Of a stretch of 64,000 bases of DNA, positions 1 through 62,964 are shown one piece after another. Each line of letters begins with the position of its first letter. Position 1 is the first letter of the stretch. Under the pieces are notes generated by a model. It did no database searches. It was not told where the DNA came from and saw nothing but the letters and a program-made list of their open reading frames with translations. The stretch comes from Mobula birostris (lineage: Eukaryota), in NCBI RefSeq assembly GCF_030028105.1, contig NC_092384.1, positions 3,887,665-3,951,664 on the forward strand, written 5' to 3'. The translations under genes and the position numbers were made by a program.

Positions 1-1933
1 CAAATATACCACATCCACTGGTTCTCCCCTATCCACTCTACTAGTTACATCCTCAAAAAATTCCATGAGATTCGTCAGACATGATTTTCCTTTCACAAAT
101 CCATGCTGACTTTGTCCGATCATTTCACCGCTTTTCAAATGTGCTGTTATCACATCCTTGATAACTGACTCCAGCAGTTTCCCCACCACCGACGTTAGGC
201 TAACCGGTCTATAATTCCCCGGTTTCTCTCTCCCTCCTTTTTAAAAAGTGGAGTTACAATAGCCACCCTCCAATCATCAGGAACTAGTCCAGAATGTAGC
301 GAGTTTTGAAAAATTATCACTAATGCATCCATTATTTCTTGGGCTACTTCCTTAAGCACTATATGATGCAGACCATCTGGCCCTGGGGATTTATCTGCCT
401 TCAATCCCTTCAATTTACCTAACACCACTTCCCTACTAACATGTATTTCGCTCAGTTCCTCCATCTCACTGGACCCTCTGTCCCCTACTATTTCTGGAAG
501 ATTATTTATGTCCTCCTTAGTGAAGACAGAACCAAAGTAATTATTCAATTGGTCTGCATGTCCTTGCTCCCCATAATCAATTCACCTGTTTCTGTCTGCA
601 GGGGACCTACATTTGTCTTTACCAGTCTTTTCCTTTTTACATATCTATAAAAGCTTTTACAGTCCGTTTATATGTTCCCTGCCATTTTTCTCTCATAATC
701 TTTTTTCCCTTTCCTAATTAAGCCCTTTGTCCGTCTCTGCTGAACTCTGAATTTCTCCCAGTCCTCAGGTGAGCCACTTTCTCTGGCTAATTTGTATGCT
801 TCTTCTTTGGAATTGATACTATCCTTAATTTCTCTTGTCAGCCACGGGTGCACTACCTTCCTTGATTTATTCTTTTGCCAAACTGGGATGAACAATTGTT
901 GTAGTTCATCCATGCAACCTTTAATTGCTTACCATTGCATATCCACCGTCAATCCTTTAAGTGTCATTTGCCAGTCTATCTTAGCTAATTCACGTCTCAT
1001 ACCCTTAAAGTTACCCCTCTTTAAGTTCAGAACCTTTGTTTCTGAATTAACTATGTCACTCTCCATCTTAATGAAGAATTCCACCATATTATGGTCACTC
1101 TTACCCAAGGGGCCTCTCACGACAAGATTGCTAATTAACCCTTCCTCATTGCTCAAAACCCAGTCCAGAATAGCCTGCTCTCTAGTTGGTTCCTCGACAT
1201 GTTGGTTCAAAAAACCATCCCGCATACATTCCAAGAAATCCTCTTCCTCAGCACCTTTACCAATTTGGTTCACCCAATCTACATGTAGATTGAAGTCACC
1301 CATTATAACTGCTGTTCCTTTATCGTACACATTTCTAATTTCCTGTTTAATACGATCTCCGACCTCACTACTACTGTTAGGTGGCCTGTACACAACTCCC
1401 ACCAGCGTCTTCTGCCCCTTAGTGTTACGCAGCTCTACCCGTATCGATTCCACATCTTCTCGGTTTATATCCTTCCTTTCTATTGCGTTAATCTCTTCTT
1501 TAACCAGCAACGCCACCCCACCTCCCCTTCCTTCATGTCTATCCCTCCTGAATATTGAATATCCCTGAACGTTGAGCTCCCATCCCTGGTCACCCTGGAG
1601 CCATGTCTCTGTGATCCCAACTATATCATAATCATTAATAACAATCTGCACTTTCAATTCATCCACCTTATTACGAATGCTCCTTGCATTGACACAGAAA
1701 GCCTTCAGGCGCTCTTTTACAACTCTCTTAGCCCTTATACAATTATGCTGAAAAGTGGCCCTTTTTAATGCTTGCCCTGGATTTGTCGGCCTGCCACTTT
1801 TACTTTTCTCCTTAGTACTTTTTGCTTCTACCCTCACTTTACACCCCTCTGTCTCTCTGCACTGGTTCCCATCCCCCTCTTGTGAACTAACCTCCTCATG
1901 CCTAGCCTCTTTAATTTGATTCCCACCCCCCAA
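1..1933 (-). pseudogene. CR1 ORF2 (APE endonuclease, start of RT), disrupted
   Basis: In-frame stops at 929-931 and 668-670 in the same frame, then a frameshift near 555 and another near 235, where a T-run is one base shorter than in the 61.8-kb copy. Confidence 0.85.
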
Positions 1934-1938
1934 CCATT

Positions 1939-2898
1939 CTAGTTTAAAGTCACCTCAGTAGCACCTTCTAATCTCCCTGCCAGGATATTGGTCCTCCTAG
2001 GATTCAAGTGTAACCCGTCCTTTTTGTACAGGTCACGCCTGCGCCAAAAGAGGTCCCAATGATCCAAAAACTTGAATCCCTGCCCCCTGCTCCAATCCCT
2101 CAGCCACGCATTTATCCTCCACCTCATCGCATTCCTACTCTCACTGTCGCGTGGCACAGGCAGTAATCCCGAGATGACTACCTTTGCGGTCCTTTTTCTC
2201 AACTCCCTTCCTAGCTCCCTATATTCTCCTTTCAGGACCTCATCCCTTTTCCTACCTATGTTATTGGTACCTATATGTACCACGACCTCTGGCTCCTCAC
2301 CCTCCCACTTCAGGATATCTTGGACACGATCAGAAATATCCCGGACCCTGGTACCAGGGAGGCAAACTACCATCCGGGTCTCTGGAGTGCGTCCACAGAA
2401 TCGCCTATCTGACCCCCTTACTATCGAGTCCCCTATCATAACTGCCCTCCTCTTCCTTGCCCTACCCTTCTGAGGTACAGAGCCAGACACTGTGCCGGAG
2501 GCACGGCCACTGTCGCTTCCCCCGGGTAAGCTGTCCCCCCCAACAGTACTCAAACAGGAGTACCTGTTGTTAAGGGGCACAGCCACCGGGGTACTCCTTA
2601 TTACCTGACTTTTCCCCTTCCCCCGCCTAACCGTGACCCACTTGTCTGCCTCCCGTGGCCCCGGCGTGACCACCTGCCTGCAACTCCTCTCTATCACCTC
2701 TTCACTCTCCCTGACCAGACGAAGGTCATCGAGCTGCAGCTCCAGTTCCCTAACGCGGTCCCTTAGGAGCTGCATCTCGATGCACTTGGCGCAGATGTAG
2801 ACGTCCGGGAGGCTTGTAGACTCCCGGGCCTCCCACATCCGACACCGAGAACAGCAAACTGCCCTCACACTCATACTGCCCCTCTCCTCAAATAACAA
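1939..2898 (-). CDS. CR1 ORF1 protein (zinc finger + SGNH/GDSL esterase), open, 319 aa
   Basis: CSRCRMW..CAKC finger, coiled-coil region, then GDSIVRGSD, HIGTNNIG and DGLHLN esterase motifs. Confidence 0.85.
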   Translation of the reverse strand: MLFEERGSMSVRAVCCSRCRMWEARESTSLPDVYICAKCIEMQLLRDRVRELELQLDDLRLVRESEEVIERSCRQVVTPGPREADKWVTVRRGKGKSQVIRSTPVAVPLNNRYSCLSTVGGDSLPGGSDSGRASGTVSGSVPQKGRARKRRAVMIGDSIVRGSDRRFCGRTPETRMVVCLPGTRVRDISDRVQDILKWEGEEPEVVVHIGTNNIGRKRDEVLKGEYRELGRELRKRTAKVVISGLLPVPRDSESRNAMRWRINAWLRDWSRGQGFKFLDHWDLFWRRRDLYKKDGLHLNPRRTNILAGRLEGATEVTLN

Positions 2899-3030
2899 CA
2901 GAAAATGAATGCCAAACCTCCCTCGCCTGTTTCCGCCTAAGCCAGTTGAGACGAAGCCCTTAAGTCTTCACTCTGCTCCCGGCTCACTCCACAGCCCGCA
3001 AACTACGCTGCCCGCTCTATGAGGCTCTGT

Positions 3031-4321: not shown

Positions 4322-4376
4322 ATGCATATATTTGATAAGCTCCTTAATCTCTTCGTACTGCAGATTGTGTACACAG
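4322..4376 (+). CDS. Gene A exon 1, signal peptide MHIFDKLLNLFVLQIVYT
   Basis: ATG at 4322, hydrophobic core, donor G|GTATGT at phase 1, 246-nt intron before the V exon. Confidence 0.8.
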
Positions 4377-7300
4377 GTATGTCTACAATTCCGTTTTTGA
4401 TCTGGAATAACAAGTTGTGAGATATTCAGAAACAGTTTGCGACGAGCAGCTGCCCAAGAAGTAAACAGCAGTTTTGTTATTTTAAATTGATTTACTTTAC
4501 TCACAGTCGAATCGAACTATTTCTGTCAGAGTGATATTATATATAAATATTTTTATTTTAATATTTTTTGTCAATAAAGCCAACCATTATACTCTGATAA
4601 CTATTGTTTTTCATTCTGACAGTTGCTGACAGGGCCTCGATCACAGTGCGCCAGATTCCTGTGAACGAGACTAAGGCAGAGGGTGCAAATGTGTCAATTT
4701 ACTGCACCTACCCAATCTTCGCTCAGAACGCAGTGGTGGCTGTTTATTGGTGGAAAGGGGGACAAGAAGGATATATAGATCCTACTGCAGACAGAAGGAT
4801 GAGTATTATAACTACACAGCAAGGTTCTGCCGAATTCCATATCTTCGACCTGAGATTCGGGGACTCTGGAATATTTTATTGCGGTGTGAGAGACTGGACA
4901 GGAACGATTTCCAAAGGCAATGGCACGAACGTTATTGTACACGGTAAATCTTACTCGGCGTGTCTTAGACAAATGTAACTACTAAATTAAACGGATCGCG
5001 TTAGATATTGATAAAGTACAATAAGAGACCGCCTCTCCATCCACAGTAATATTCTTCATTTCGGGTTTCAATAACCACTGTTTACTGTTGGTGGAACAGT
5101 GGAATCTCGGAAAGAACATGATGTTGAGTGCACGGTTGTTGCAGCAACGCCACTCTGCTAGCTGATATAGCTCGCTCTTGTATGTCAGTTCTATCCGTCT
5201 TGGAGTCCAGTGCCGATGCACTGCGGTAGCGTTCATAGGTTCATTATCCATGAGAAATCGGATAGCAGAGAGGAAGAAATATTTCTTTGAATCGCAAAAT
5301 GTGTCATCACGCTTTTATACCTCCTTCCTCACGATTAGAATGAGAAGTGGAAATGTCCTGGGTAATGGAAGTCCCTAATGATGGACGCAGCCCTCCCGAG
5401 ACACTGCTACTTGAAGATGTCATGGATACTATGGATGCTAGCACCCATGATAGAACTGACTCGTTATATAACTTACTGCAGCTTCTTTCGATCAGTACAG
5501 TAGTCGCTCCCCAGTATGCCAGGCGGTGATGCAACCTGTTAAAATGCTCTCATGGTACATGTTTAAAAGTTCTCGAGGGTTTTAGGTGACAAACCAAATC
5601 TCCTCAAATTTCCAATGAAATATAGACACTATCTTGCCCCCATTATAGCAACGTCGATATGTTAGGACCAGGTTAGTTCCCCAGAGATATTGACACCCAG
5701 GAACTTGAAATTGCCCACTGTCTCCAAATTTGAGGATTGGTTTATGACTCCTCTTCTACTGTTTCTGAAGACCTCGGTCAACTTTCTTGTCTTACTGACG
5801 TTGAGTGAAAGGTCGTTGCTGCAACTCCACTCAGCTGGTTAATATCGCTGTCTGCTGTACGACCTCCCCTTTCCTTCTGAGATTCTGCCAACAATTGTTG
5901 TATCATTACCAAATGTATTGCTGACATTTTAGCTATTCCTAGCTACATAGCCATGGATATAGAGAGAGTAGAGAATTGGGCCAAGGGCACATTCCAGAGG
6001 TGCACCAGTGTTGATCCTCAGTGAGGAGGAGTTATTGATACAAATTATTTTCTTCAGGTCAGCAAGTCGAGAATCCAATTTCAGAGTAAGGTACAGAGAC
6101 CCATAGCTTATCAATCAGACTGTAAGAATGATGGTGATAAACGCTGTAGTCAATAAACTGCAAACAGCATCGTGACAAGGTGTTGGTATTGTCCTGGTGA
6201 TTTAAGGCCGTCTGATAATCCACTGATTGTGGTTCTAGTCCTGTGAGGTACCATATCTGCTGCCGTAGATTCTGATTCTGAAAAACACAGCAGCTTACAC
6301 TATATGAATTCGTCCGTCAATACCTATTAGGAACCATTACACGGTTTTACAGTACCGTAGTGGTATTGACGGTTTTCTAGATTGTTCTCTGTTTTATAAA
6401 AACAACATAGTTTATTACTTAGTTTAGAATGCAGAATCTCTGCAATTCTATGCCCAATGAAGCAGTGGAGGCTACCTCAGTTAACATATTTAAGAGAAGG
6501 TTGGATAAGAGTTTTGCATATTACAGAAGTTAACGATTATGGAGAAAAGGCAGGTTGATATGGAGATGAGTCCATTACCAGAGCATCCATAATCTTATTG
6601 AATGACGGAGAAGGCGCGAGGGGTCAGATGGCCTTCTTCTGCTCCTATTTCTTATGTTCTTAAGTACTCAGTTATACAGTAGAAAGTGCAAAAGAGCAAA
6701 ACAATGATATTATTAATTTAAACATATTAAACATTTCATGAAATTTTGCGAGTTTCAGTGGTGAAAGCAGTATAGCATGTAATATAAGTTTGTCTTGGAG
6801 GCAGAGATTGGTAAAGTAAATGGCAGTATGTTTGCTCAGGATGGAAGGCAGAACACATTAAATCACACAATTGAGCATTGTACATATAATTAATGCAACG
6901 TGTATCAAAAGATGGGTCCAAAGAAGGTAAAAATAGAAAGATTTGTTAAATTCAGAATTCCTAAATATTTAAAGGTTGTAACCCCGCTTGGGATGATATG
7001 TCCTTGTTGAAAAGCCCGGGGCATGGACTGTGGACAGACGAAATTCCTTTCTAAGCTGTTACTGGGAAATTTATAATTTATTTTGCTCAGCAATTAAACC
7101 GTAATTTCTGGTCATCATTGTCATCAATGTATTGGAAGCAACCTATATTTAAATATGTGCCTCTTTTCACCTTGTGTCTGCATTACCGCATCAAGCTAGA
7201 TTGAAGATTACTACAGCACTATGTTCCCCCCAGAAAGGACGGTACTTTTCTTTTTGTTTCAATATTATTTTCCAGTTTTTTTTTGTTTTTTTTTCCCGGA

Positions 7301-10300: not shown

Positions 10301-13300
10301 AATGATGTTGTGCCGCACAGACTTCACCTAATCATTGCAACACGCACAAGTTCCATATCCTCTCCATATATACTGATTTTCACCCCCATTACATTCAAAC
10401 AGATATCTTTATTCCATTCTCTCTAAATAGTAACATAATGTTAAGCAAGTTACAGAACAGTTCACACAACATTTTTTTCCTGATTTAAAAGTGGCATTTT
10501 TATTTCTTCTTACAGATTGATCTGACCTAGTGTAGGATTTGCAATCTGTACAAGTAGGAGATTTGTTCTCGCAACTTCTTGGATTTTGCTATTGCTTCTG
10601 AATTATGTTCTGAATTGAACGTTCTTCCCTTAAATTGTTGTTGATAGTAACACAATCTATTGTATTTTGAATTACTCACTGCATCATTTTGCATCACTGT
10701 GTCAGTAATCAAAATCTCGGATGTGCTTCTGCATTGTAAGATTTTGGCCGGTATTCATACTAGATAATGTAGACCATCTTGCGTGCAAAATCTCCTTCCA
10801 TTAAATTTCTCCAAAAATAGTTAACCTGCGTTTTGTTATCAACTCTTTCCGCTTTGTTTTGACTCAATCTCGTCCACCTGATCGGTTGGGTGGAACCAAT
10901 ACCAATCCGAATTTTGGAACTGGTATCTGCAGTGAAGGTCCCAAATTCAAGGTTCAAGATTGCTTCATGTAATTTCCTGTACACAAGTATAAAGGAAAAT
11001 GAAATAATTATTACGCAGGATCCGATACAATACAAAAAAAAACACTTGATAACAACACAATTGCAATAAGATACACGGTAAATTTAATTCCATACGTTAG
11101 CTAAGATATGTTGGCCATACCATCAAATTATTTTAATGCAATACGCTGTAAGGTAATTGACCTGCCTAAACGTGTATGTATATTTTCAATCGGTAGGAAG
11201 AGTCGATGAAAGATATAGTGGGATTCAAACTGACTTCAGTATTTGCAGAAATAATTCATTTGTTTGTGCAATAGGTAGTGGGGTTCTGTTGTTTTGGCGT
11301 ATAACAATTTACGACATATAGAATGTAAGAAGAATTACGAAGACCTAAGCCGAAATGGTTTACACCACTACACATTAAAGAACGTGCAGAACGTTCAAAA
11401 ATTTATAAAAGGTGAATTTAAGATTAGAAGAACTAACAAAAACAAACTAATCTTACTGTAGCTTTTTGCACGTGGATAAAGAGAAATAAATAGTGGTCAC
11501 GGAATCATGGAGTAACGCTAAAAGATTTCATGTAATTTCTCCGTGATAACTTCACCTGAAATATCAGTGTTCTATTCAATGAAACAAAAAGCTAATGGAA
11601 ATGCATATCACCACATGAAACGTCATGCAAAAATATTTAACCTGCTTGAGTTGGGATTTTCTCTGATAAATGCGCGTTTAGAGATTTTATCTCTCTTTTT
11701 TTAACCACTTGCAGTTCCGCCGGCGCCGTTGAAAATCATCGAAGAGAACGCTCCTTCCGTGGCGTTGACGTGCACAACTGCCGCTTTTTTCCCGAAGGAC
11801 TATGAGCTCATATGGTATAAAAATGAAATCGAAATCACTTCTGGAATACATACCACACAAATGCAGATCAAGGAGGGATTATATCTCGTTTCAAGCTCCC
11901 TCAATGTAATAGAAAGCTGGTCTGTTTATACTTGCCAGGTGTTTCATGAGTCTATCAAGGCGCCAGCATCCGAATCATATAGAATCCGATTAGGTAAGAG
12001 GTTTATATTCTCAACCGCATCTTGAGATGCGTCCATGTATTATGTCTGGTGTTTATAAATTTCTCACATCCAGAGGGGAAGGTACTATATTCAAGGGTAA
12101 AGGGAAATGTAAGTTCTTGGCTACACAGAAGAATAGTGGGATATCATATTACATTGCAGTTGTGTTCTCCATCAATGCAATAGTGAGCAGACCCACTTAT
12201 ATTTGCCAGTTGTTTCATGAATCCATGAAGACGCCATCCATTGAAACATATAGAAGTGATGATTTTGGTGGTGTTTAGAGTCTGAACGGCATCCTGAGAT
12301 GTATTTATATTTTATACGACCGTAACACCTTTCCACAAAGGACCAAATTAGGCCATTCATCCCAGTGAATTTACTGCGCCATTCCTTCAAGTCCGATTTA
12401 TTATCCCTCCCAATCCCATTTTCCATAACGTTGGACATCTTGACTAACCAAGAACCTACCAATATTCGCTTTAACTATACAAATGACTTGGGTTCCAATC
12501 AATTCCACAGATTCATTAAACACTGTCTAAAGAAATTCATACTTCTTCTAAATGTGGTTGGTGTGGTGGGTGTCTCTTTATGTTCAGACTGTGCTCATCG
12601 TAGATTTATGTTTCATGCTTACGAATTCCTCACAAACGGAGTAGATTGACCGGGAACAATAAGGCAGAGGCTATTTGAAAGTACTAATGTTATAGTCTAC
12701 TAGATTTGTGCTGTTTTCTGCTTGCAAAGGAACACCTTACAGCGGTTTGACGCAGCTCTCTTGTTTCTGCATGTTATGTCTGCCTTAATAATGAAGGAAT
12801 CAACTGAGATTTGAACTGGGCTTAAATAATGCTACAATTTTTATATTTCGACTAACCAGTTGCTTTATAGCCTTTGCACTCGCTCATTCATGCATTTTCT
12901 CTCCTTCACTCAAGTCAACTCACATGTAGTAAGAACTCACGCAGCATTTGGAACATATAGTGTAAATCATTCACACTTTAAATCATCTTAAAATATGACC
13001 TGCTTTCAGTTTTAAAGATTACAAAAATATTATGTTACAATCAGGCAAAATTGAGGAAACATGTTATATTAGTACTTTTAAACAAAGTAATGTAGAAATT
13101 TATTCAGCATGCGCAAATAAACATTCAACAAGTTTAAAGCATGACATCCTCTCATCAACCGAAATTCCAACAGCTCCTGACCTTTCTGTAACTCCGAACT
13201 TTGATCCAAGGCAGGACTCAGATTATATATTTCTGAACTATATGCTGTTCAGTCCCAGCATAACGATCTACATTACTCCTGTTCCAGATCTGACAGCACG

Positions 13301-14786
13301 TTATTACTCTCAGAGCAGCAAGTTGCCACCGTCGCTCCTCTGCTGCTGTAGACACTTTCTGTTATGTGCGTTGTTTATTTTTTCTCTCCTGCTGAGTTCT
13401 GAATGACATTCATCACGGCCCTTCAATCATTACACTGTTCGCCCAATCATTCCACTTTACTCTTGAAGAAGCTGCATGGGCTTCTTCTCATTCTTTACTC
13501 TTTTCTTTAACCAGTTTTCACACAGCAGCTGAAACTTCTCTATACGCATCGTCAACAATCTTCTGCCCTGCAATTTACTATGATTACATTGAAGATCTAC
13601 TAACTCCTCGTGTACTTTTTTTGGTTTCTTTTTCTAACCTGGCACTGTCCTTTAGCAGTGCCAAGTAGCTAATGTTCATCTTACTGATTGGTACTGACTT
13701 CTCATTGGATGTTGGCCCAAGTTACAAACTGTGTTACTTTAAGGCTCTTTCCCACACACTTGTTTCCGAAATAATTTCTACGTTCAAAGACCAGGCCAGC
13801 CAGGTCAGGCTACACAGGGCCCAGCCGACCAGATCACAGGCTATTCCTTCAACAAGGCTGCATTTTTACATGATTAAGATCATTTTCTCTAGAAGTCGTC
13901 TCAGGTTTAGCAGGTCATCAACAGTAAAACCATTCTGTCCATGTTCAGTTCCTCCGACTTAGCTTTGGGGAAAAAACAGTTCACTGAACAGTTCAGGAAA
14001 TGACATTGCAAGAAAAAAAATAAAAATAGGGTCTTTTAAGAGACCCCTGGACAGGTACATGGAGTTTAGAAAAAATAGAGGCCTATGGGTTACCATAGGT
14101 AATTTCTAAAGTACGTACATGTTCGGAACAGCATTGTGGGCCGAAAAGCCTGTATTGTGCTTTAAGTATTCTATGTTCTACGTCTCTAATAGCAGTTTTC
14201 ATCCCCGCGACCACATGGACAGAACACAAACTTATGATTTGGATCTTTCCAGAGCCCTTTCCTCATTAATGTTCGTTGATTTGTAGATTTCAGTACTTTC
14301 TGGTCAATATTGTATATTATATTTACATAGCGTTAAGCCAATAATAAGATATGTGAAATAACATTCATTAAAACAATAATTGAATTCATTCGACTTGTCG
14401 GCTGTGAAAAGGTATCGCATCTCCACCCTCTTTCTCTCTCTCTCTCTCGCTCTCTCCCCGCCCCCCCCCCACCGTCCTTTCACCCCCTCGCTTTTTTATG
14501 TCTTCCAGACTCCTCTGGATGCCTTCTCTATGTTTTTACCGATTTCTGAACTATCATTACCTCCTCCACAAAGAAATGCGTCTTTCTCCTCTATCCACAA
14601 CACTATTCTTGTCTTGTCTTTGTGTTTTTTCCCCTAATTTTTCTGTTGCTAAAAAATAATTACCAACTTATATGTTTCCTAGCAGCCCGGTGGATTCAAG
14701 GCATTAATCTGTGTCGAATTCTGCTTGGTCTGTTGGTAATAACAGTGGGCATCGTGCTCATCGTCAATTATTTGCAATCATTCTAA
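4322..14786 (+). CDS. Gene A: spliced type I membrane IgSF receptor, leader-V(J)-C1-TM(Arg)-very short tail, 252 aa; join(4322..4376,4623..4943,11715..11993,14683..14786)
   Basis: Four exons with GT/AG junctions, all introns phase 1. Total 759 nt = 252 codons + TAA, with no internal stop. Canonical V and C1 Cys/Trp motifs and a hydrophobic TM are present. Orthology (SIRP-like, NCR3-like, PRARP-like) cannot be settled by eye. Confidence 0.88.
4623..4943 (+). CDS. Gene A exon 2, V-set Ig domain with joined J-like G strand
   Basis: Acceptor TTCTGACAG|, donor G|GTAAAT. Protein ITVRQ..SIYC..VYWWK..DRRM..AEFHIFDLRFGDSGIFYCGV..KGNGTNVIVH carries the B-strand Cys, C-strand Trp, D-x-G-x-F/Y-Y-C and GxGT motifs. 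Confidence 0.93.
5330..6230 (-). mobile_element. Degenerate Rex1/Babar-like LINE RT fragment in gene A intron 2
   Basis: Minus strand gives remnants such as INTGAPLECALGPILYSLY and a FKFLGV-type C-terminal motif; many stops. Confidence 0.6.
8850..9065 (+). mobile_element. V-SINE/HE1-like SINE, degenerate
   Basis: TCTGTAAGGAGTTT..GTTCTCC..CGGTTTCTTCCCACAGTCCAA core resembles the shark HE1/V-SINE central domain (recognised from memory). Confidence 0.55.
11715..11993 (+). CDS. Gene A exon 3, C1-set Ig domain
   Basis: Acceptor CACTTGCAG|, donor G|GTAAGA, phase 1-1. Protein ALTCTTAAFFPKDYELIWYKN..GLYLVSSSL..YTCQVFH fits the C1-set pattern C-x4-F-F/Y-P..W and Y-x-C-x-V-x-H. Confidence 0.93.
12157..12305 (+). 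pseudogene. Degenerate tandem copy of the 3' half of the gene A C1 exon plus adjacent intron
   Basis: VVFSINAIVSRPTYICQLFHESMKTPSIETY parallels LVSSSLNVIESWSVYTCQVFHESIKAPASESY. Nucleotide anchors GTTTCATGA and GCATC(T/C)TGAGATG recur at a 271-nt offset. The B-strand Cys and C-strand Trp are missing. Confidence 0.75.
13990..14170 (+). mobile_element. CR1 3' end fragment
   Basis: GGGTCTTTTAAGAGAC..GGACAGGTACATGGAG..GGGCCGAA..CTATGTTCTA tail; the same family recurs at 48.5 and 51.9 kb. Confidence 0.6.
14683..14786 (+). CDS. Gene A exon 4, stalk + TM with Arg + stop (AARWIQGINLCRILLGLLVITVGIVLIVNYLQSF*)
   Basis: Acceptor TGTTTCCTAG|CAG is a NAGNAG tandem acceptor; both choices keep the frame from the phase-1 C1 exon. 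About 20 hydrophobic residues follow. TAA at 14784-14786; donor AG|GTAAAC at 14795. Confidence 0.82.
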
Positions 14787-17689
14787 TTCAAAAGGTAAAC
14801 ATTTCACAATAATAACTAGAAGTAATAAGCCATGAATTAACTATTGGTGTTAGTTATTTGTGACGTTAATTATTTTAATGTTTTTTTCTCTCTCCAAGAT
14901 AACGAATTGTCTTCATTAGTTGACATTTCAGATCCATCTGGGTATTCATGAAAAGATAATTACAGCATGCTAAAGATCTGAAATAGTCTTTAATGATTTT
15001 TTTAGGCTGTCATTCCATATTATTTTCTGAAATAACACACACCGACTCAGATGCACTAAATATAAGTCTCTCAGGAACAGTTTTCCATATAGCACCTTCT
15101 ACTGCACGGTTAGTCCAGCAGCTCTACAATCAACTGCGTGTAATATTGTAGAGTTTTTATTTTCACTCCTGTAGTGGGTTGACTGTTCATACCATCAATG
15201 ATTTTATCTCTCCTGTATCAATACAGTTATCGCTGTAATAAAACAAGTTCCGAAATATTTTATGTGTACAGCTATTTTTGTACACTAAATCTGGGAGGCT
15301 GAGCGAAGTTAAATTGGAGCTAAACGGCGACTACTTTGCTTACATCTTCGGAAACAGCTCTATTTCCATTTTTAACCCAGGCAACGTGTTCATATTCTGT
15401 ACCTTCAATTTTGACTCGGCCCAAGAATCCCCTTCTAGCAAGTGTCTATACCAAATTTTGAACTACAGATCTATTTACAATATATAAATAGCTTATCTGA
15501 CATTAATAAATAGATGATTAACGTTTCAGAGATCTACATTCCATTTCAATAGATACTGGTCAAATTTGACAGGAACAGCCTCAATGTGCATTAATTCTTA
15601 ATGAATGTTTTAGAGATCTAAAATCCATTTCAATAGATACAGCAACCCACACTGAAAATGCTGGTGAACACAGCAGGTCAAGCAGCATCTACAGGAAGAG
15701 GTACAGTCGATGTTTCGGGCCGAGGCCCTTCGTTAGGTTTTAAATTCAGTAGATACGTGTCAAATTTGATCTGGAATATCCTCTATGTACAAAAAATTCT
15801 AGCACCTGTACAAAAGTATAACATTTTTAAATATTTTCATGTTTGCGCATTTTAAGTCACTTTTGGAAAACTCATCAAATTTCGGCTACAGAAAAAGACA
15901 TTTAAGGTGTTTTTACTGCTGTCAAATGTCAAAACGAGTCAAATTTGACCCGAATAGTATCTAAGAATTAATATCTTTATTTTGCCCTTTCAAGGTTCTG
16001 TTGAAGACCCTGATCTGGAGTTACACGCAGATGTCGGGTCCCGGGACCCGTTCTCGGGGTTTCAGGATTGGCCGTTGTTCGGCACACCAAGGGTTCGGCG
16101 TATGAGTCCGGCTCGGATTCGAAAGGCTGGGATCTCGGGGCTGTGGAAACGGGCCGAACGAGGGTCGGTGTCACTGCAGGAGACCTGTGTGTCGTCGGGG
16201 GAGTCGGAAAATCTACCGCTGTGTGCCCGAAGACCTGAGATCTTTGCGATCTTCAGGCACGGAGCTCGAAAAAAAAGAGACGTAACGGACTTTTAACATC
16301 GTAAATCAGCGAGTTGTTGTTATGTCTCCCCGATCGCAGGGAAAATGCAGACATCTCTTTCTCCCTTATTAGGGAGAGAGAGCACCCGTGGTATGTCGTA
16401 TACCGGCTAAAACGGGACGTCTTTGCGGTAACTGCACGTCTGTGTCTTTGTTATTGCTTTGTTTACGCTTGAGTGCTCGGTGGAGGTATCAATGCTTCTG
16501 TTTTTTTGCCGGTGTAGGGAGGGGAGGAGGGGGATTGTTGCACGCTGCCGCTTACGCGCGGGAGGGAGAGGAGCTGTGGGGACTTTGAGGTTCTTAGGTT
16601 TATCTGTCGTTCATTCTTCGTGGCATTTCTCTGCTTTTGTGGATGTTTGAGAAGAAAAAAAAATTCAGAATGTATATTGCATATATTTCTCTGATATTAC
16701 ATTGGACCTTTAAATCTTTGAACCCCTGAGTTATTTTGTAATTCTGAGTATTACCCAAACTTGAGAGATAGCCAAGTCCAGAAGTTTGTCTGTTTCAGGA
16801 AGCACAGTCTTGTCCTTTGATTCATTAGAAGTCACTGTAGTTCCTTATTTTCAACTTGCTGCTTAAAGGTAACCAGAATCATCTTGAAAGCAATCTCAAA
16901 CACATCTTAAACTTTGATGCCTGGAATTGTCCCAAACTTCAGAGGCACTGTAATAGAAACGATATTTCCATTACAGCGTGATTGTTGTGGCATTGGCCCA
17001 CTCTTTTATGTATGGATAATAGAAAAATATTTAAGTTATAGTTTATTTCCAGGAAGAGAAATTATTCCATCATTGTATGTCAACCCATAAGAATGTACTC
17101 TTTTTTCGAAATCCAGCACCAAATAGCTTTGAGTGAAAAACACATGTTTATATTGACATGTTCTGTTCTTTAAGTTTCATTTTTACATAACACGTCATAA
17201 GTGATTACTGGTGCGATGAATAGCGTTTTGGAAAGACGAGGTTCTAAGGTGTCATGTATATTCCTTTTTGATTACCCCTCATGATTAGGTTTCAAATTGC
17301 ATTACAAAGATTTCATCACATTTTCAGCATAAAGAACCGTAGATTAATCTCAGAGGATATACAAAATAGCTGACTAATAATTTTGAATTAAATCTATCGC
17401 TTATTCCTTTCTGAAGATTTCGTTCTCCTTTCTCCCAATTACTTGTTCTTTCTTTCTTGTAGAGGTACTTCTGTTCACTCGGTTTGCTTCACTTCCTTTA
17501 TTGCAAAGCACCTTCCGTTCAAAAAGGTTTCATTGGCGGTTAAATGTATTCAAATCACGACCTTGTACAGAATTAGATAATTAGAAATGCTAAACTCTCA
17601 TAACCATAAATGTGGATTAATAAAAATTTCGTGCAACGTATTTTTTTAAAAGGTACTGAAATAAAGGATATCCGTATCCGTCACGTCCA

Positions 17690-19150
17690 CACTCCAGTGC
17701 CACACGCTGCCACACGCTCCTCATATTTTAACCGTTTCATTCTCGGAATCATTCTCGCCCATCCCCTTCTGGACTGTCTCCAATAACAATGCATCCTTTC
17801 TGAGATAAGTGGCCTAAAAATGTTGACAATATTTCAAGTGCGACCTGATTTGTGCCTTATAAAGCTTCAGCATTATTTCCTTGTTTTTTTTTATATTCTA
17901 TTCCCCTTGAAACAAATGTCAACATTGCATTTGCCTTCTTTACATGACTCAACCTGTAAGTTAACCTTCCGAGAGTCTTGCACGAGGACTCCGAAGTCCC
18001 TTTGCAACTTTGTTGTTTGAATATTCTCCCCATTTAGATAATAATCTGCATTATAGTTCATTTTACGAAAACATATTGTCATGCATTTCACAACGCTGTA
18101 TTCCATCTGTCACTTTTTTGCCCATCCTTCCGGTTTATCTAAGACCTGCTGCAGTCGCATTGCTTCCTCAGCACTCCCCACCCCTCCACCTATCTTCACA
18201 ACATTCGCAAACTTTGCCACAAAGTCATCAATTACATAATCCAATTCATTGGTAAACAATGTGAAAAGGGGAGGAGAAGATGGTGGCGCGACGCAGCGCG
18301 GGCGGCCGCTCGAAATGATATCGTACGTGTTAACTAGGGCCGTTCACAATCCTGATTTGATGGAGACGGACGTGAGAAGCACTGAGGGACACCTGGAGAA
18401 ACTTCTGCAATGCCTGCTTCACTGCCGCTGTTATTGTGCGATCGAGAATCTCCGGAAGGGAAGGCCCCAAATCCTCGGCTTTCCCTGTTGCCTGTTGCCG
18501 GGGACGGGGTCGATGCGCACGGCCGAGATGATCCTTGGTACTCGGTGTCGGAGGGCTGGTTGGATGCTCGAAGTTTTCGGACGGACTCAAGAGTCGTCTG
18601 TGGTCGGGTGCTTCCAGGATGCTGCATCGGCAAGTTTGCGGCTCTGGAAGCTCAAGGCAGGAAGAGTTTTTTGTTTTTTCTTCCTTCTACCGTCTGCGTG
18701 AGATGATGGGATTTTCGAGAGACTTTGAGACTTTTTTTTTTTTACCGTGCCCATGGTCTGTTTTTCATCAAATTGCGACATTGCTTTGCATTGTTGTAAC
18801 TATATGTTATAATTATGTGTTTTTTTTTGTCAGTTTTTCAGTCGGTTTGCCTTGTGTTTCTGTGATATCATTCTGGAGAAACATTGTATAATTTCTTAAT
18901 GCATGCATTACTCAATGAAAACAAAAGTGGACTGCGTGTCCTCATAATCGAATCGAATCTAAAAAAGTACTGGTCCCAATACTGATCCCTGGGGAACATA
19001 ACCAGTCAGTGGCAGCCAACCAGAAAACGCCCCCTTTATTGCCAATCGCTCCCTTCCGCCTCTCAGCCATTCCTCTATCCAAGCTGGTGTCTTTCCTGTA
19101 CCACAATAGGATTTTATCTTGTTAAGCAGCCTTCTGTGGTGTTCCACGGG
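17690..19150 (-). mobile_element. Degenerate CR1 RT 3' fragment interrupted by a GC-rich short element (about 18272-18960)
   Basis: RT remnants (ADYYLNGE, VPQGSVLGPVLF) lie on both sides. The insert starts GAAGATGGTGGCGCGACG and ends in an AATCGAATCT-type tail. Confidence 0.65.
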
Positions 19151-19199
19151 ACAGCGCTGGAGCCGCTTTTTTTTACTGCTGTACGTCGTAGCTGAATAT

Positions 19200-21870
19200 C
19201 CATTGTTCTGTTGACAGGTTTGTAGGTACGAACATTACATTTGCCTTCTTTACAATAGACTCAAGCTGTGAATTTACCTTCCTGGAGTCTTCTGGGATAT
19301 AGTTGGAGGGGCAGGTGCTGTTGTAAAAACAGGTAGATTGAGGAAGGACTGAGACAGCTTCGACAAATGGGCAGAAAGTGGCAAATGAAATACAATGTTC
19401 AAAAATGAATGGTCATACACTTTGGTAGAGAAATAAATGTGTAGACCAATTTATACACGGGGAGAATATCCAAAACTCTGAGATGCAGAGGGATTTGGGA
19501 GTCTTTGTGCAGAAAAACCGTAACAGATAACTTGCAGCTTGGGTCGTTGGTGAGGAAGGCGAATGCAATGTTAGCATACATTTCAATAGGTCTTCAATCC
19601 AAGGCCTGAGATATGACGCTGAGATTATAAGGCACTGGTGTGGCCGCACCTTGAGTAGTGTGAACGGTTTTGGGCTCATCACTAAGTAAAGATGTAGTGG
19701 CAGCGGGGAGTGTCCCAAAGAGGATCGCAAGGATGAATCTCGGAATGTAAGGGTTATCACATGAAGAGCGTTTGATAGCTCTGGGTCTGTAGTCGCTGAA
19801 ATTTAGAAAGATGATGGGGTGTCTTATTGAAATGCTTTGAATGTTGCAAGGCCTAGACACAGTAGATCTGTGAAGGGTCTTTTCCATTCTGGGGGAGTCT
19901 AGTATAAAAACAGAGATGCAGAGGATTTTTTTTTTTTAACCAGAGGGTGGTGAATTTGTGGAATTTATTAGCAGCAGGTTGTGGCCAAGTTGTTGGCAGT
20001 ATTGAAGGCCGAGCTTGAGGAGGTGGAAAATTGATCCACCATGTTTAATTGGGGTAGCAGACTCGATGGGGAAAATGGCATAATTCTGCTCCTATATCTC
20101 ATGGTCTTATGGTCTTATGTGAGGCACCTTATAAAACGCCTTCCGAAAATCTGAGTAAATTACATCCACTGCCTCTCATTTGCTCACCCTGCTTGTTAAT
20201 TCATCGACGATTTCTAGTAGATTTGTTAGGCAGGATTTCGCTTAACAGAAACAATGCTGACTTTACCTATTTGTCATTAGTCTCCAAGTACCCCGAAACG
20301 TTGTCTTTAATCATGGAATGCAGCAATTTCTCAATCACGGTGGTAGGACTAATTGACCTACAATTTCTTCTCTTTTATCTTCCTCTGTTCTTAAAGAGTG
20401 GCGTGACACTTAGAGTATTCCAGTCATCCGGCTTCATGCCACAATGCTTGAAGGATCATGATCAATGCATCTGTTATCTCCTTAGTAACTTTCTTTACGA
20501 CTCTTGCCCTAAGCTGTATGGTCTGAGGTCTACGATCTCTGGCCTAATCATCATGGTCTGTAGGGTAGAGACATGGACCACAGACTGTTTGTGTTCTACG
20601 GTCAGTATTCTGCGGTCAGTGGCCTTAGCTTACGACTCTGGGTTGTTATCCATCTGGTCCAGATAACTTACCGATCATAGGACCTTTTCAATATCTCTAG
20701 CACGTTTTACTTTGTAATAGCAATGGTACTCACTTCTGCCCTCTGACGCTCACGGGTCTCTATCACATAGCTAGTGTCTTCCACAGTGAAGACCGAAGCA
20801 AACTACTTATTAAGTTCCCACAAAATGCTGTTGGAACGCAGCTGGTCAGGCAGCATCTGTAGGAAGAAGTGCCGTCAGTCATGTCCTGACGAAGGGTCTC
20901 GACCTAAAACGTTGACTGTACTTCTCCCTATAGCTGCTACCTGGCCTGCTGTATTCCACCGGCATTTTGCGTATGTTGCTTAAATTTCCAGCATCTGTAG
21001 ATTTTCTCCTGTTTGCGTTACTTATTCAGTTCATCAGCCATTTCTTTGTCCCCCATTACTACTGTAACAGCATCATTTTCCAGTGGTCCAATACGAACTC
21101 TCACTTCCTTTTGCTCTTTATATATGTGAAACAAACTTTAAATATTCTGATTCATATTATTGACTAGTTTGCCCTCATATTACATCTTTTTCATTCTTAT
21201 GGCTTTATTATTGTCTTTTGTTGGATTTGTAAAGCTTTTGAATCATCCAACTCGCCACTCAAGTTTGCCACCGTATATGCCTTCACGTTAATGCAGTCTT
21301 TAACGTCCCTTGTCAGCCACCGTTGCCTACACCTTCCATGTGAGAACAGCTTCTGCTGTGCGGCATATCTATCTTACGTCTTGTGAACTATTCCCAGAAA
21401 CTTCAGCCACCTCTGTTCTACCATCATCCCCGCCAGTATCTCCCTCTAATCAACATGAGAAAGCTCTTCTCTCATGCCTCTGGAATTCCCTTTACTCCAT
21501 AGGGAAACTGATACACTTGACTTATGCTTCTACCTCTCAAACTGCAGTACGAATTCAATCATATTGTGATGACTGCCTCCTAAGGGATCCTCTACGTTAT
21601 ACGGACTAATAAAATCGGAGCTATTAAACAACACCAATCTAAGGTAGCCTTTCCCCTGGTAGGCGTCTCTGAAAAGCCATCTCGTAGGAATTCCACAAAT
21701 TCGCTTTCTTGTGATCTGACACCAACCTTGTTTTCCCAAATGCTTTTCATAGTGAAGACTCCTATTGCAATTGTGACATTACACTTATTACATGCCCGTT
21801 GCGGCTCCCTTTGCATCTCAACCTCGCCTATTGGCTACTGTTTGGAGGCCTACATACGATCCCCATAATG
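19200..21870. mobile_element. Cluster of degenerate CR1 fragments in both orientations, with a hairpin insert at about 20820-21010
   Basis: RT C-terminal remnants on + (19.3-20.1 kb); endonuclease/RT remnants on - (EFVEFLRDGF, LGGSHHNMIEF). Confidence 0.6.
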
Positions 21871-28619: not shown

Positions 28620-30760
28620 TGGGCTCTCTTCCAGGGAAGGTGGGACCTGTACAGAAAACAGGTTGCATCTAAACTGGAGGGGAATAAGGGGATTAATGTT
28701 CCAGCAATAATGTTCGCTAGTACTGCACGATGGGACGGGGATGATAAACGTGTTGTGCGTTGCGGGGCGTGGGGGATAGGAACCAGAGTGCTAGAACAGA
28801 TAATAGAGTGATTGTAGTCACAGATGTTGCAAAGACCTCAGACAAAGTCAGGACAAATGGTTAAACATGGCGGGACTAATGCCCTGAGTTCTGTATATTT
28901 CAGAGCAAAAAGTATTGTAGAGAGGGCAGAGGAGTTCACGGCATGGATCTACACATGGAATTATGATATTACAGCCAGTCTTGACATTTGTTTGCAGGAG
29001 GGTAGGACTGGCAGCTCAATATTCCAGAGTTCCTTTGTTTTAGATGTGATAGGGAGTGGGAGTTTAAAGGATGAAGGCGGCTTTACTATTCACGGAGCAT
29101 CGCACGACAGTACTCAGTTAGGACAGGCTGGAGAACTCGTCTAGTGTGGTTCTATGAACAGAAGCGTTGAATAAGTACGTTATTGGGGCTTCATAATAGA
29201 CCACCCAAAAGTCCGCGGAATATAGAGGAATACATTTGTAGAAAAGTCGCAGATTGTTGCCAGAAATATAAGGCTGCGACAGTAAATGATTTTCAATTTC
29301 CACATATTGTCTGGGACGCACATATTGTAAAAGCACTAGATTGGATTCAGTTTGTGAAATGTGTTCAAGGGCGTCTCCTGAATCGTTGCATGGAAATCCC
29401 AACGACATGCTGTGCAGTCAGAAACAAGAGAAAATCTACAGATGCTGGAATCCAAGCAATATAGACGAAATGCTGGAGGACAGTCGACGTTTTGAGCTGA
29501 GAGCCGGCTAATAACATCGACTGTATTCTTTTCCATAGATGCTGCCTGGCCTGCTGAGTTCTTTTAGAAGTTTGTGTGATATAGTGTCCAATTCCTGATA
29601 TTCCATTAGAGAAAGATACACGGCAGATGAAACAAGTTTGTATCGGGGAACACTATGATCATAATGACATTAGTTTAAATGCAGTTATAGAAAGGCGATG
29701 GGTCTGTTGCTTGGGCTGAAATTTTAAACTGAAGAAAAGCCACCTTTGCCGCTCCGAATGTATCTGACAAGTATGGATTGGGATTCGCTGCTTTCCAGCA
29801 AATCTGTGCGTGGTAAGTGGGAATACTTCGAAACTGAAATTGCCATTGTTTGTCATAATAAAAGCCAAGGATGTCAGGTTTGGAGGACCTTGGTTTTCCA
29901 TAGATATTGAGGACGTAGTGAAATAAAATAAAGAAAGTGCAGAGCACTAAATGAAGTGTAAGGCAAGTATAGGCAGGTAGGAGTGAATTAAGTGCTTGAG
30001 AAGTGTAAGAAATGTAAGGGGACATTCAAGACAGAAACCAGGATGGCTTAAGGAAGACGCGAGTGCTCTAGCAGACAAGGTGAAGGAGAACTTCAGGGTC
30101 TTCTGTAAATATGTTAAGAGAAAGTTGTTGCAACGGATGAAATTCGTCCTTTGGAATATCAGAATAATATTCCTTGCCTGGAGGCAAAAGTGGTGTGGGA
30201 GACTTTGCATGGAGGTTTTGCATCTTTATTAGCTCGGGAGACGAATACAGAGGCTAGAGAAGTGACGCGAAGCACCACAGAGTGGTGAATGCTATGAATC
30301 TTACAAAGAAAGACGAACTGTTTGCCGTCTTGAGAGAAATTAGATACGAAAAACCACAAGAGTATGTAAGTTTTTCCCTTGTCAAGTCTAGAATCTCCAG
30401 CGGTGTTAGCAGATATATTTCAATCACCGTTAGGAGCAGGCGAGATACTGGAGAATTTTAGTATAGTTAATGTCGTTCCATGTTTAAGAAAGGATCGAAA
30501 ATAAAACAGAAAATTATAGGCTGGTGAGCCTAACACCAGTAGAGAGATATCTATTTGAAGGCATTTTATTAGACTGGATATATGAGTATTTGTATCGACA
30601 GCGATGCATTAGAAATAGTCAGCATGCCTTTGTCCCTGGCAGGTCGTGCCTAACTAATCCTACAGAGTTTTTCGAGTATGTTCCCAGGAACGTTAATTGC
30701 CGCAAGGCAGTAGATGTTATCCACATGGACTTTAACGTTAAAGAGAAGTTTGGACAGGTA
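28620..30760 (+). mobile_element. Old degenerate CR1 (ORF1 end, endonuclease, RT start)
   Basis: Remnants LHLNWRG, VYFRAKSIVERAEEFTAWI, QHAFVPGRSCLTN; many stops; hairpin insert near 29.4 kb. Confidence 0.65.
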
Positions 30761-30959
30761 TCTGGATGAGACGACTATAGAGGGCTATTATCTCCAGGTG
30801 GGGTCAATTGGGACAAACAGTTTAAATCGTTTGAGTGATCTAGATGGGCCGAAGGGTTCGTGTCTGTGCTGTAGTTTTCTGTAACTCTCCGACACTATGA
30901 CTCGATGAGATCCACCAAAATACTCGTTGTATCAGCGAAACTGCGCACAATTGGATATT

Positions 30960-38708: not shown

Positions 38709-38864
38709 TCATTGATTTGCTAGTTCCTCCATGAATTTACTCGTTCTACATACCTGGGCATATATTGTATTCTGTTCAGAATCTCTGACTATAGTGGACG
38801 TCTTGGCCCGAGCCATATTTAGAGTGACGTATGTTAGCTTTTGATCATCTTCGGATTGCTTTGT
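38709..38864 (-). CDS. Gene B terminal coding exon with ITIM and ITSM (TKQSEDDQKLTYVTLNMARAKTSTIVRDSEQNTIYAQVCRTSKFMEELANQ*)
   Basis: Acceptor GATTTTCAG| at phase 0; 52 codons ending in TGA. LTYVTL is at 38820-38837 and TIYAQV at 38751-38768. Absent from the ORF track because it is short and has no upstream start. Confidence 0.85.
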   Translation of the reverse strand, partial: TKQSEDDQKLTYVTLNMARAKTSTIVRDSEQNTIYAQVCRTSKFMEELANQ

Positions 38865-50888: not shown

Positions 50889-51847
50889 TATCTCACAGCA
50901 CAAAGCTGAAAGAAACAGTTGAATGAACGAAGTGGCAAATAAACAGCGAGAGGAGTGCTACCAGTAAGGTTTGGTTCCAGTGGGCGTGTCCGGCTTCAAA
51001 TCTGCACACATATTAATTACATCTCTACGCAACAACACACTTTAATTTTTCAGTTACTGGTTGCTCACGCGTCTCCAAATGCTGCGCAAAAGACAAATCT
51101 TTTTACCTTTTTTTGTTTTTGCTGTGGCTGCGATTGCCATTGTGCAATGCTCTCGCGCTGGCTGTTACGAATATCCTGTCCGAAAGGACTGATTATGGAA
51201 AGCCCGTGACATTTCGCTGGTACATTCTTTTTTGAATGCACCAACAGTTTCCAGTCAACCTTCCGAAAAGCAAGTACAAAAACACTTCACCACGACCGCC
51301 TCGCCTACTCTTCTTGCAACATCGTCAGCCTATGTTGTTGTGAGGCATACACTCTGTCAGAGGATTGCACAGTTGAACTCATTTTGGAATTGATAGGCTC
51401 GCTGTAAATGGCGACCTGCAGATCCTGCGGTCGCAACTGGCAAAAAAACCCGGGCGTACATAAGAACAATATCTTTCCACCACCGCCTCAGAGGTCAGAC
51501 CCACAGTACATGTAAGTAGGCGGCCTTTCACGGGCATTTGAGCTATAGTTGTTAGAAGATTATTGAAATTTAGTCAGTCTCCGGGTATCTTGATTCCTCC
51601 TCAGTTTACAGTGAGCTAAATTTTCATACATTTAGCAAGCATTGGTAAAAGTATTCTGAACTCATCCACGTTGAGATAAAAGACTACAAGATAATACAAA
51701 AAAAAAAATCAAAACAACTCCAAAATTGGAAAAGCACGGAGGAGCAAAGAGTGGAACCGCCGTCTGCGATCTCCAAGCTGTTCACCCCGATGGTATTTTC
51801 GTTGTTGCTGGTGTCTTCAATCATTTTGAGTTAGATTTACACGGATT

Positions 51848-52300
51848 TTGCCTCGATCGGAGAGCGTAGCTTATGAGAATAGGTTGAGTGAACTTGGCCT
51901 TTTCTCCTTGGAGCGATGGAGGATGAGAGGTGACCTGATAGAGGTGTATAAGACGATGAAAGGCATTGATCGTGTGGATAGTCAGGGGCTTTTTCCCACG
52001 GCTGAAATAGCTAACACGAGGGAGATAGTTTTAAGGTGCCTGGAAATAGGTACCGAGGGGATGTCAAGGATAGGTTTTTCACACAGAGAGTGGTGGGTGC
52101 GCGGAATGTACTGCCAGCGGTGGTGGAGGTGGATACAATGGAGTATTTTAAGAGCCTCTTAGATCGTTACATGGAGCATAGAAAAATAGAGGGCTATGTG
52201 TTAGCTAAATTCTAGGCAGTTTCGAGAGTAGGTTACATGGTCGGCACAGCCATGGGCCGAAGGATATGCAATGTGCAGGGTATGTTCTAAGAAGTTCCTG
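51848..52300 (+). mobile_element. CR1 3' end upstream of gene B
   Basis: YENRLSELGLFSLERWRMRGDLIEVYK followed by the family 3'UTR. Confidence 0.8.
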
Positions 52301-58660: not shown

Positions 58661-58699
58661 CCCCGAATTTGATCAGGGCATAACGGCGTCAACGCGTGG

Positions 58700-62880: not shown

Positions 62881-62964
62881 GATTGTAGGAATTACTAAAA
62901 TCAAGGCAAGAGGCCGAGGATGAAGGAGTAATGAATCTCGGAGAGAAGTCATTTTTTTTTTTTC

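Follow-up and report, generated by a model that had tools for sequence, protein, structure and literature searches.

The window analysed here is a stretch of 64,000 nucleotides from the manta ray Mobula birostris (contig NC_092384.1 of RefSeq assembly GCF_030028105.1, positions 3,887,665 to 3,951,664, forward strand), and its main subject is gene A, a predicted surface-receptor gene whose last exon encodes a membrane anchor headed by an arginine. Gene A is an intact four-exon gene in the order leader, V(J) domain, C1 domain and transmembrane anchor, with a product of 252 amino acids (joined frame 759 nt); its exon junctions are all canonical GT/AG and all in phase 1. Its parts, in window coordinates, are the following.

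4322..4376, plus strand: exon 1, start codon and signal peptide MHIFDKLLNLFVLQIVYT; located by tblastn with the family protein P0002, with the phase-1 donor ACAG/gtatgt and the same layout in the M. hypostoma orthologue P0152.
4623..4943, plus strand: exon 2, germline-joined V(J) domain ending in ..GNGTNVIVH (Pfam V-set, E 2.2e-8).
11715..11993, plus strand: exon 3, C1-set immunoglobulin (Ig) domain (Pfam C1-set, E 2.6e-12).
14680..14685, plus strand: tandem TAGCAG (NAGNAG) acceptor, read from the sequence; the choice of site yields ..RLAARW.. or ..RLARW..
14683..14786, plus strand: exon 4, encoding a stalk of 10 residues, the membrane anchor headed by Arg, a tail of 6 residues and the stop codon, read from the sequence; 31 of 33 residues identical in M. 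hypostoma.
14706..14717, plus strand: Asn-Leu-Cys-Arg, an NxxR motif as defined in PMC6557307 and PMC2413239, with the Asn codon at 14706-14708 and the Arg codon CGA at 14715-14717.
14718..14765, plus strand: 16-residue hydrophobic core ILLGLLVITVGIVLIV, directly after the Arg.
14766..14771, plus strand: Asn-Tyr at the inner end of the anchor, where the shark relatives have Asp-His (alignment and pattern scan).

Exon 4 starts in phase 1 at 14683, behind an AG at 14681-14682, where a pyrimidine-rich tract ends in TAG/CAG. It is translated as (A)ARWIQGINLCRILLGLLVITVGIVLIVNYLQSF and stops at a TAA at 14784-14786; spliced in phase to the C1 exon, its product ends in ..GINLCRILLGLLVITVGIVLIVNYLQSF-stop. 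The original prediction, made from the letters of this stretch, had described an exon at 14683-14786 with Arg at 14715-14717 and NYLQSF before the stop, and the sequence reads as it said. The tandem acceptor accounts for the two predicted isoforms of the M. hypostoma orthologue, X1 and X2, which differ by one Ala. The tail of six residues holds neither a signalling motif nor a basic stop-transfer sequence. When family proteins were searched against the window by tblastn, no anchor or tail exon like that of P0002, an ITIM-bearing relative described below, was found anywhere in it, so that gene A is able to make the short-tailed product only; an alternative inhibitory isoform of gene A was ruled out on the same ground. 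Between exons 3 and 4, at 12168-12254 (plus strand) and 175 bp downstream of the C1 exon, lies a C1-exon remnant that corresponds to the 3' end (..YICQLFHESMKTPSIETYR). Its protein identity to the end of the C1 exon of gene A is 55% (tblastn E 6.6e-6); blastn gave no nucleotide match, and the remnant contains no open exon. A partial duplication that has decayed is its probable origin.

Relatives of gene A were identified by comparing its C1 domain with 1.8 billion representative proteins and then by word-indexed searches. The closest is P0002 (XP_072135199.1), a M. birostris protein named SIRP-alpha-like, which has an uncharged anchor and a tail of 115 residues with the motifs LMYACV and TEYAGI, resembling the immunoreceptor tyrosine-based inhibitory and switch motifs (ITIM and ITSM). 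The V domain of gene A is identical to that of P0002 over all 107 residues, and the C1 domains are identical at 84 of 93. The gene of P0002 spans 18,899 bp and is taken as the upstream neighbour of gene A, from its equal length to an 18,899-bp stretch that lies 25 kb before the window. In M. hypostoma the corresponding pair consists of LOC134356409 and LOC134356411. The former is the orthologue of gene A, equal to it in length and four-exon content, with the isoforms X1 and X2 (P0152 and P0151); it ends in ..GINLCRILLGLLVITVGIALIVNYLQSF and keeps the Arg.

Because their V domains are identical, gene A and P0002 are best read, as far as sequence goes, as a paired receptor, made up of a short-tailed, Arg-anchored twin of the activating type and an ITIM-bearing inhibitory twin. 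The ligand-binding domains are near-identical in two closely placed genes, one of which has a basic anchor and a short tail free of motifs, the other an uncharged anchor and ITIMs. The two domains of the pair appear to have had different histories. Within a species, the V domains of the activating-type and inhibitory members are identical at 107/107 and 101/107 positions, and between the species those of the orthologues at 98/107 and 100/107, the value for gene A and its own M. hypostoma orthologue being 98/107. The C1 exon, on the other hand, tracks orthology (88 of 93 residues identical between gene A and P0152). V domains that are alike within a species while the C1 domain follows orthology point to V-exon-only conversion, and the sequences suggest that gene conversion has been confined to the ligand-binding exon of the receptor pair.

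The anchors of the retrieved relatives fall into two classes. Class I anchors are uncharged and are followed by a basic stop-transfer sequence and tails of 80-150 residues with ITIM-like motifs. Class II anchors are headed by an Arg, followed by exactly 16 hydrophobic residues and Asp-His, and have short tails; they were found in Chiloscyllium plagiosum, C. punctatum, Scyliorhinus canicula, Heptranchias perlo and Heterodontus francisci, and the design is seen in part in a truncated gene model of Hemiscyllium. The Mobula anchor has the class II layout with Asn-Tyr in place of Asp-His at its inner end. The Arg on which the original prediction rested is indeed conserved, being kept in the M. hypostoma orthologue as well as in the distant shark relatives; in the anchor alignment 8 of the 9 rows have Arg in this column, and the remaining row, a Heptranchias protein, has Gln. 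When a profile derived exclusively from the shark rows was tested on exon 4 of gene A and on the class I anchors, the former scored 12.7 bits and the uncharged anchors at most 8.0 bits. A score of 12.7 bits was reached by 2 of 5000 full shuffles and by 9 of 5000 block shuffles. Judged by these scores and shuffle counts, the placement of the Arg in the anchor of gene A is not a matter of chance, and the Arg-headed anchor is a conserved module that predates the split between sharks and rays.

An arginine is also found in the stingray members P0082, P0164, P0165 and P0166 (Hypanus sabinus and Hemitrygon akajei), there within a class-I-like anchor (..WILRCAMGVLTILVLMIVIGTRCRK..) and with short tails of 28-36 residues after a TRCRK stop-transfer sequence. 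Apparently, to judge from these anchors, the arginine type of receptor originated a second time, independently, within the family. Two further observations concern the immediate surroundings of the Arg in Mobula. The Cys at 14712-14714 (plus strand), just before the Arg, is shared by the two Mobula species but by none of the shark relatives, and its depth is about equal to that of the dimer-forming Cys of FcR-gamma, the second residue of the FcR-gamma anchor. The Arg codon of the manta ray, CGA, is one transition away from the Gln codon CAA.

The position of the Arg relative to the membrane was taken from an AlphaFold2 model of the M. hypostoma orthologue, run with a 25-sequence family alignment (mean predicted local distance difference test score, pLDDT, 87). 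In this model the C1 domain ends at residue 215 and is followed by one helix of 31 residues (221-251). Arg230, residue 10 of the helix, stands immediately before the hydrophobic core, over which the pLDDT is about 90. The Arg is therefore placed within a continuous predicted helix, at the outer edge of its hydrophobic core, which upholds its assignment to the membrane segment in the original prediction. The 16-residue core has a summed biological-scale free energy of about -4.4 kcal/mol, and the best 19- and 21-residue windows by simple hydrophobicity sum include the Arg. Since the core counts just 16 residues, a bilayer-spanning helix of 19-21 residues must include either the Arg side or the Asn-Tyr-Leu side. 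By model and sequence the Arg thus lies at the edge of the outer leaflet, where it may be buried or may snorkel. The Arg of the recognised FcR-gamma partners occupies the same outer-edge position. Counted from the first hydrophobic residue, the Arg of gene A would be at depth 5 and the Asp of tetrapod FcR-gamma at depth 6, and in both helices the first inner polar residue would fall at position 22, as we infer from the sequences.

The original prediction had derived a coupling of gene A to a zeta/FcR-gamma adaptor from the four residues Arg-Ile-Leu-Leu (RILL) at the head of the anchor, which it read as a likeness to the alpha chain of the T-cell receptor (TCR). The TCR-alpha anchor (FRILLLK) was confirmed in full-length PDB chains. 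Gene A resembles TCR-alpha in the RILL itself, in the V-C1 layout of its ectodomain, in having a tail just a few residues long and in a stop near the end of the anchor exon. It differs in that there is no rearrangement, no likeness past RILL and, five residues after the Arg, in the place of the TCR-alpha Lys, a Leu (RILLGL). The second basic residue is thus lacking, as had been predicted, and neither the R-x-x-x-x-K spacing nor similarity over the whole anchor is present. At the position of RILL the aligned relatives have RLIL, RLVL, RLLM, RSIL or RFIL. No TCR-alpha chain in PDB, in which full-length chains are present, matched exon 4 or the class II profile at E<=10, and on the elasmobranch profile TCR-alpha scored -0.7 bits, a value also reached by 703 of 1000 shuffles. 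Given the anchor composition of the family, the expected frequency of I-L-L after an Arg is about 0.02, and RILL occurs 4 times in the six-frame translation of the window.

Because the relatives vary, the TCR-alpha chains in PDB are unmatched, the profile score is at shuffle level and the occurrence of RILL is at chance level, the resemblance of RILL to TCR-alpha is, by these sequence comparisons, coincidental. The original prediction had itself allowed for coincidence; its TCR-alpha-like reading of the motif does not survive. It is extremely improbable that the anchor is truly related to that of TCR-alpha and that a zeta-binding Arg has been kept from an antigen-receptor ancestor. The shared RILL and the very short tail of both proteins would agree with such a descent, as would the V(J)-C1 ectodomain, the nearest folds of which include Ig light chains and TCR beta chains, but the missing second basic residue, the variability of RILL among the relatives, the lack of a PDB match and the shuffle-level profile score all speak against it. 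Searches for other relatives of the anchor gave little: exon 4 had a sole match in PDB, the cytochrome b6f subunit PetG, at E 0.56 and dismissed as chance, the class II family profile had no match in PDB, and in the protein atlas exon 4 matched unnamed clusters.

A different group of receptors offers a closer comparison. The NxxR anchor, with an Asn three residues before the Arg, occurs in all activating members of the leukocyte receptor complex (LRC) except KIR (PMC6557307). Carriers are LILRA, PIR-A, NKp46, GPVI, Fc-alpha-RI and OSCAR, the chicken ggFcR, and in Xenopus ILR, the XFL 'TM1' and SLAM-like receptors (PMC6557307, PMC2413239, PMC4536121), giving a published range of amphibians, birds and mammals (PMC6557307). 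These anchors also have unusual acidic residues at the inner end, and association of the subtype with FcR-gamma has been demonstrated experimentally, including that of Xenopus XFL (PMC6557307, PMC2413239, PMC4536121); a DYT motif just outside the anchor is a further feature (PMC6557307). The effect of position has been tested in macaque KIR: FcR-gamma, and not DAP12, is bound through an Arg at anchor position 4, whereas DAP12 is bound through a Lys at position 9 (PMC8102735).

Gene A has both the Arg at the outer end and the Asn three residues before it, and shares with the NxxR anchors the short tail, the separate anchor exon and membership of the activating half of a paired family. Its shark relatives, too, carry an unusual acidic residue, Asp, at the inner end. 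The differences lie in the host, which is a ray, and in the ectodomain, which is V(J)-C1 and not composed of C2-type LRC/FcR domains; within the family, Mobula has Asn-Tyr at the acidic place and most shark members lack the Asn at -3. Membership of the NxxR subtype is therefore incomplete, gene A having no acidic inner end (Asn-Tyr, with Asp-His in the shark members) and no DYT motif in its stalk (AARWIQGI). The Asn at -3 stands in the sequence N-L-C-R in the two species of Mobula, while Chiloscyllium and Hemiscyllium have N-I-F-R. Taken together, the anchor of gene A looks like the NxxR subtype of FcR-gamma-coupled receptors, which is its nearest known kind, and because of this resemblance coupling to a dimer of the gamma/zeta type, carrying ITAMs (immunoreceptor tyrosine-based activation motifs), is by analogy our best guess.

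The anchors of human GPVI, NKp46 and Fc-alpha-RI have 16 hydrophobic residues after the Arg, as in the gene A family; those of GPVI and Fc-alpha-RI were looked for in PDB and not found there. On the elasmobranch profile the three score 10-15 bits, above all 1000 shuffles each, which we treat as a lead only; the SIRP-beta1 anchor scores at shuffle level. A complex prediction with two copies of Xenopus FcR-gamma (residues 19-55) and the 33-residue product of exon 4 gave 0.09, against a mark of 0.34, and counts neither way.

The ectodomain is less informative about the known relatives of gene A. Sequence and fold searches returned Ig heavy and light chains, TCR beta, CD276, PD-L1, butyrophilins, tapasin-related protein and SIRP-beta1, none of which stands out, and the public names of the family members are correspondingly inconsistent (SIRP-like, tapasin-related-like, CD276-like and MHC class II beta-like, MHC being the major histocompatibility complex). 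With SIRP-alpha and SIRP-beta1 the family shares a V domain with a J-like strand followed by C1, and the side-by-side arrangement of ITIM-bearing members and short-tailed members with a charged anchor that have near-identical V domains. Gene A nevertheless differs from SIRP in having two domains, V-C1 and not V-C1-C1, with one C1 exon between the V and the anchor exons, and in its outer-end Arg in place of the central, DAP12-binding Lys of SIRP-beta1. A second comparison, made by description only, is with the non-rearranging VJ-C1 genes PRARP, UrIg and NKp30, which likewise have a germline-joined V(J) exon, in gene A followed by a C1 exon. Genes of the PRARP/UrIg type are treated in the shark MHC literature as relatives of the precursors of antigen receptors, and UrIg is presented there as an MHC-linked molecule that resembles an antibody, whereas gene A encodes a predicted membrane receptor in a cluster of paired genes.

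We consider it fairly probable, on comparative grounds, that gene A is the activating-type twin of its ITIM-bearing neighbour and that its Arg pairs with an ITAM adaptor of the FcR-gamma/CD3-zeta family. Both twins are members of a family of V(J)-C1 surface receptors in sharks and rays that do not rearrange. The Arg, probably aided by the Asn at -3, would pair, within the outer leaflet, with the Asp in the membrane segment of an ITAM adaptor dimer joined by disulfide bonding, for which a member of the FcR-gamma/CD3-zeta family is the best guess, as in the NxxR receptors GPVI, NKp46, Fc-alpha-RI and Xenopus XFL. Binding of a ligand by gene A would then switch the cell on, and binding of the same ligand by the inhibitory twin would switch it off. 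The coupling mechanism put forward in the original prediction is in this sense plausible, and its stated basis, the likeness to TCR-alpha, is wrong.

Several observations weigh against this explanation. A core of 16 residues lets the Arg snorkel to the head groups, so that its burial is not proved by the sequence alone. One class II anchor, in P0090 of Heptranchias perlo, has Gln where the others have Arg (..VVLQLFVGLL..ILVDH), which might reflect decay of the copy, variation or an error in the gene model. The Asn at -3 is absent in the members from Scyliorhinus, Heptranchias, C. punctatum and Heterodontus and present in 3 of 7 lineages only, and in Mobula the acidic residue of the inner end is replaced by Asn. 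Expression was examined over the interval 11500-15500 in three small M. birostris runs (117-159 million letters of contigs). No RNA contig covered exon 4 in these runs, which hold almost none of the words of the exon. A contig of 358 letters in run X2, a presumed RNA run, connects by splicing the 3' part of a V exon (..AACGTTATTGTACAC) with the start of a C1 exon, corresponding to window positions 11714-11828 (plus strand). It has 5 mismatches to the window in 115 bases, one of which, A>T at 11745, is the E-to-V change of P0002, and because of this change the contig, on its sequence, reflects splicing and expression of the P0002 gene rather than of gene A. Nor was the M. birostris product of gene A found in the protein collection searched.

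The adaptor itself is a further difficulty. A search with an FcR-gamma sequence gave at least 139 matches among 150 candidates scored, of which the best 120 listed are all from tetrapods; it showed no adaptor in Mobula, a result that at this depth says nothing on rays. The literature on adaptors in cartilaginous fish yielded nothing useful beyond the survey of Akula et al. (2014), who found no FcR-gamma in shark genomes (PMC4016189). FcR-gamma's presence in elasmobranchs is disputed, and the partner of gene A might instead be a dimer of the DAP12 or DAP10 type or an adaptor specific to elasmobranchs. The 2014 survey favours such a partner, and so does SIRP-beta1, which among activating receptors of mammals comes closest in ectodomain layout and uses DAP12. 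We nevertheless think it unlikely. The family profile scores the SIRP-beta1 anchor at shuffle level, and sharks have T-cell receptors, so that a dimer of the zeta family is to be expected in them. Moreover, DAP12 users have a central Lys (position 9), and an outer-end Arg (position 4) chose FcR-gamma in the direct test on macaque KIR (PMC8102735).

The remaining alternatives do without an adaptor. If the Arg is interfacial, snorkelling and partnerless, gene A could be a signalling-dead decoy that competes with the inhibitory twin for ligand or acts by side-by-side contacts; the very hydrophobic 16-residue core, at about -4.4 kcal/mol, is able to serve as an anchor by itself while the Arg sits at the head groups, and published NxxR receptors often reach the surface without FcR-gamma (PMC6557307). 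Conservation of an Arg, a fixed spacing of 16 residues and a polar or acidic end from sharks to rays is, however, not what a functionless boundary residue would lead one to expect, and an Arg outside with an Asp inside runs contrary to the positive-inside habit that the uncharged paralogues follow, which makes a decoy distinctly unlikely. Gene A might, alternatively, be a duplicate that in M. birostris is silent or in decay and whose exon 4 goes unused. This would agree with the lack of RNA contigs on this exon and of the protein in the collection, but the RNA sets are tiny, the frame is open, every splice site is canonical and M. hypostoma has an intact orthologue with two predicted isoforms; we regard silence as improbable. 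The C-terminal hydrophobic stretch might also be a cleaved signal for attachment of a glycosylphosphatidylinositol (GPI) anchor and not membrane-spanning, as only six residues follow it and there is no basic stop-transfer sequence. Such signals usually have small residues at omega and omega+2, a polar spacer of 5-10 residues and a hydrophobic C-terminus. By eye, gene A has no good omega site, since AAR would put Arg at omega+2 and with G-I-N the spacer would be just 3 residues long, and a cleaved signal would not be expected to keep the Arg, the fixed spacing and the Asp-His end over such a distance. A GPI signal is accordingly very improbable.

Elsewhere in the window a more distant member of the family, gene B, is encoded on the minus strand, with its V exon at about 50236-50679 and its C1 exon at about 47629-48057. 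Its exons at 38709-38864 and 42347-42444, also on the minus strand, encode an uncharged anchor (..GTGIILFLIVIFIVIGR) and a tail with LTYVTL (ITIM) followed by TIYAQV (ITSM). Long repetitive open frames on both strands at 40600-41100 and 43700-44740 (for example repeats of FTLHLVVCPH and SVLPSLLVQG) indicate, by their sequence, minisatellite arrays in the region of the large intron of gene B. Fragments of frames like those of reverse transcriptase and long interspersed nuclear elements (LINEs) occur on both strands at 1-3000, 18900-19250, 30400-32600, 48600-48960, 51800-52160 and 58200-63999. Judging from these fragments, the receptor genes lie in retroelement-rich DNA.

Pathogens that exploit inhibitory receptors are repeatedly met by paired on/off receptors whose tips are near-identical. 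The pair of the manta ray is a clear case, with identical V domains, ITIMs in one gene and an arginine anchor in the other, and it places a well-understood design within an uncharacterised and little-studied family of sharks and rays. If the anchor is truly an NxxR module of the FcR-gamma type, the known range of this module extends from the tetrapods to the cartilaginous fish, and the disputed presence of an FcR-gamma-like adaptor in sharks and rays becomes a testable question. A bolder idea, which we put forward tentatively and think rather doubtful, is that the elasmobranch Arg anchor exon is the same exon-shuffled module as the tetrapod NxxR anchor, inherited from the ancestor of the jawed vertebrates and already serving non-rearranging V(J)-C1 molecules. 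If this were true, a gamma/zeta-type ITAM dimer would exist in cartilaginous fish, contrary to the 2014 survey, and the docking of a single Arg on such a dimer would be as old as, or older than, the assembly of the T-cell receptor with CD3.

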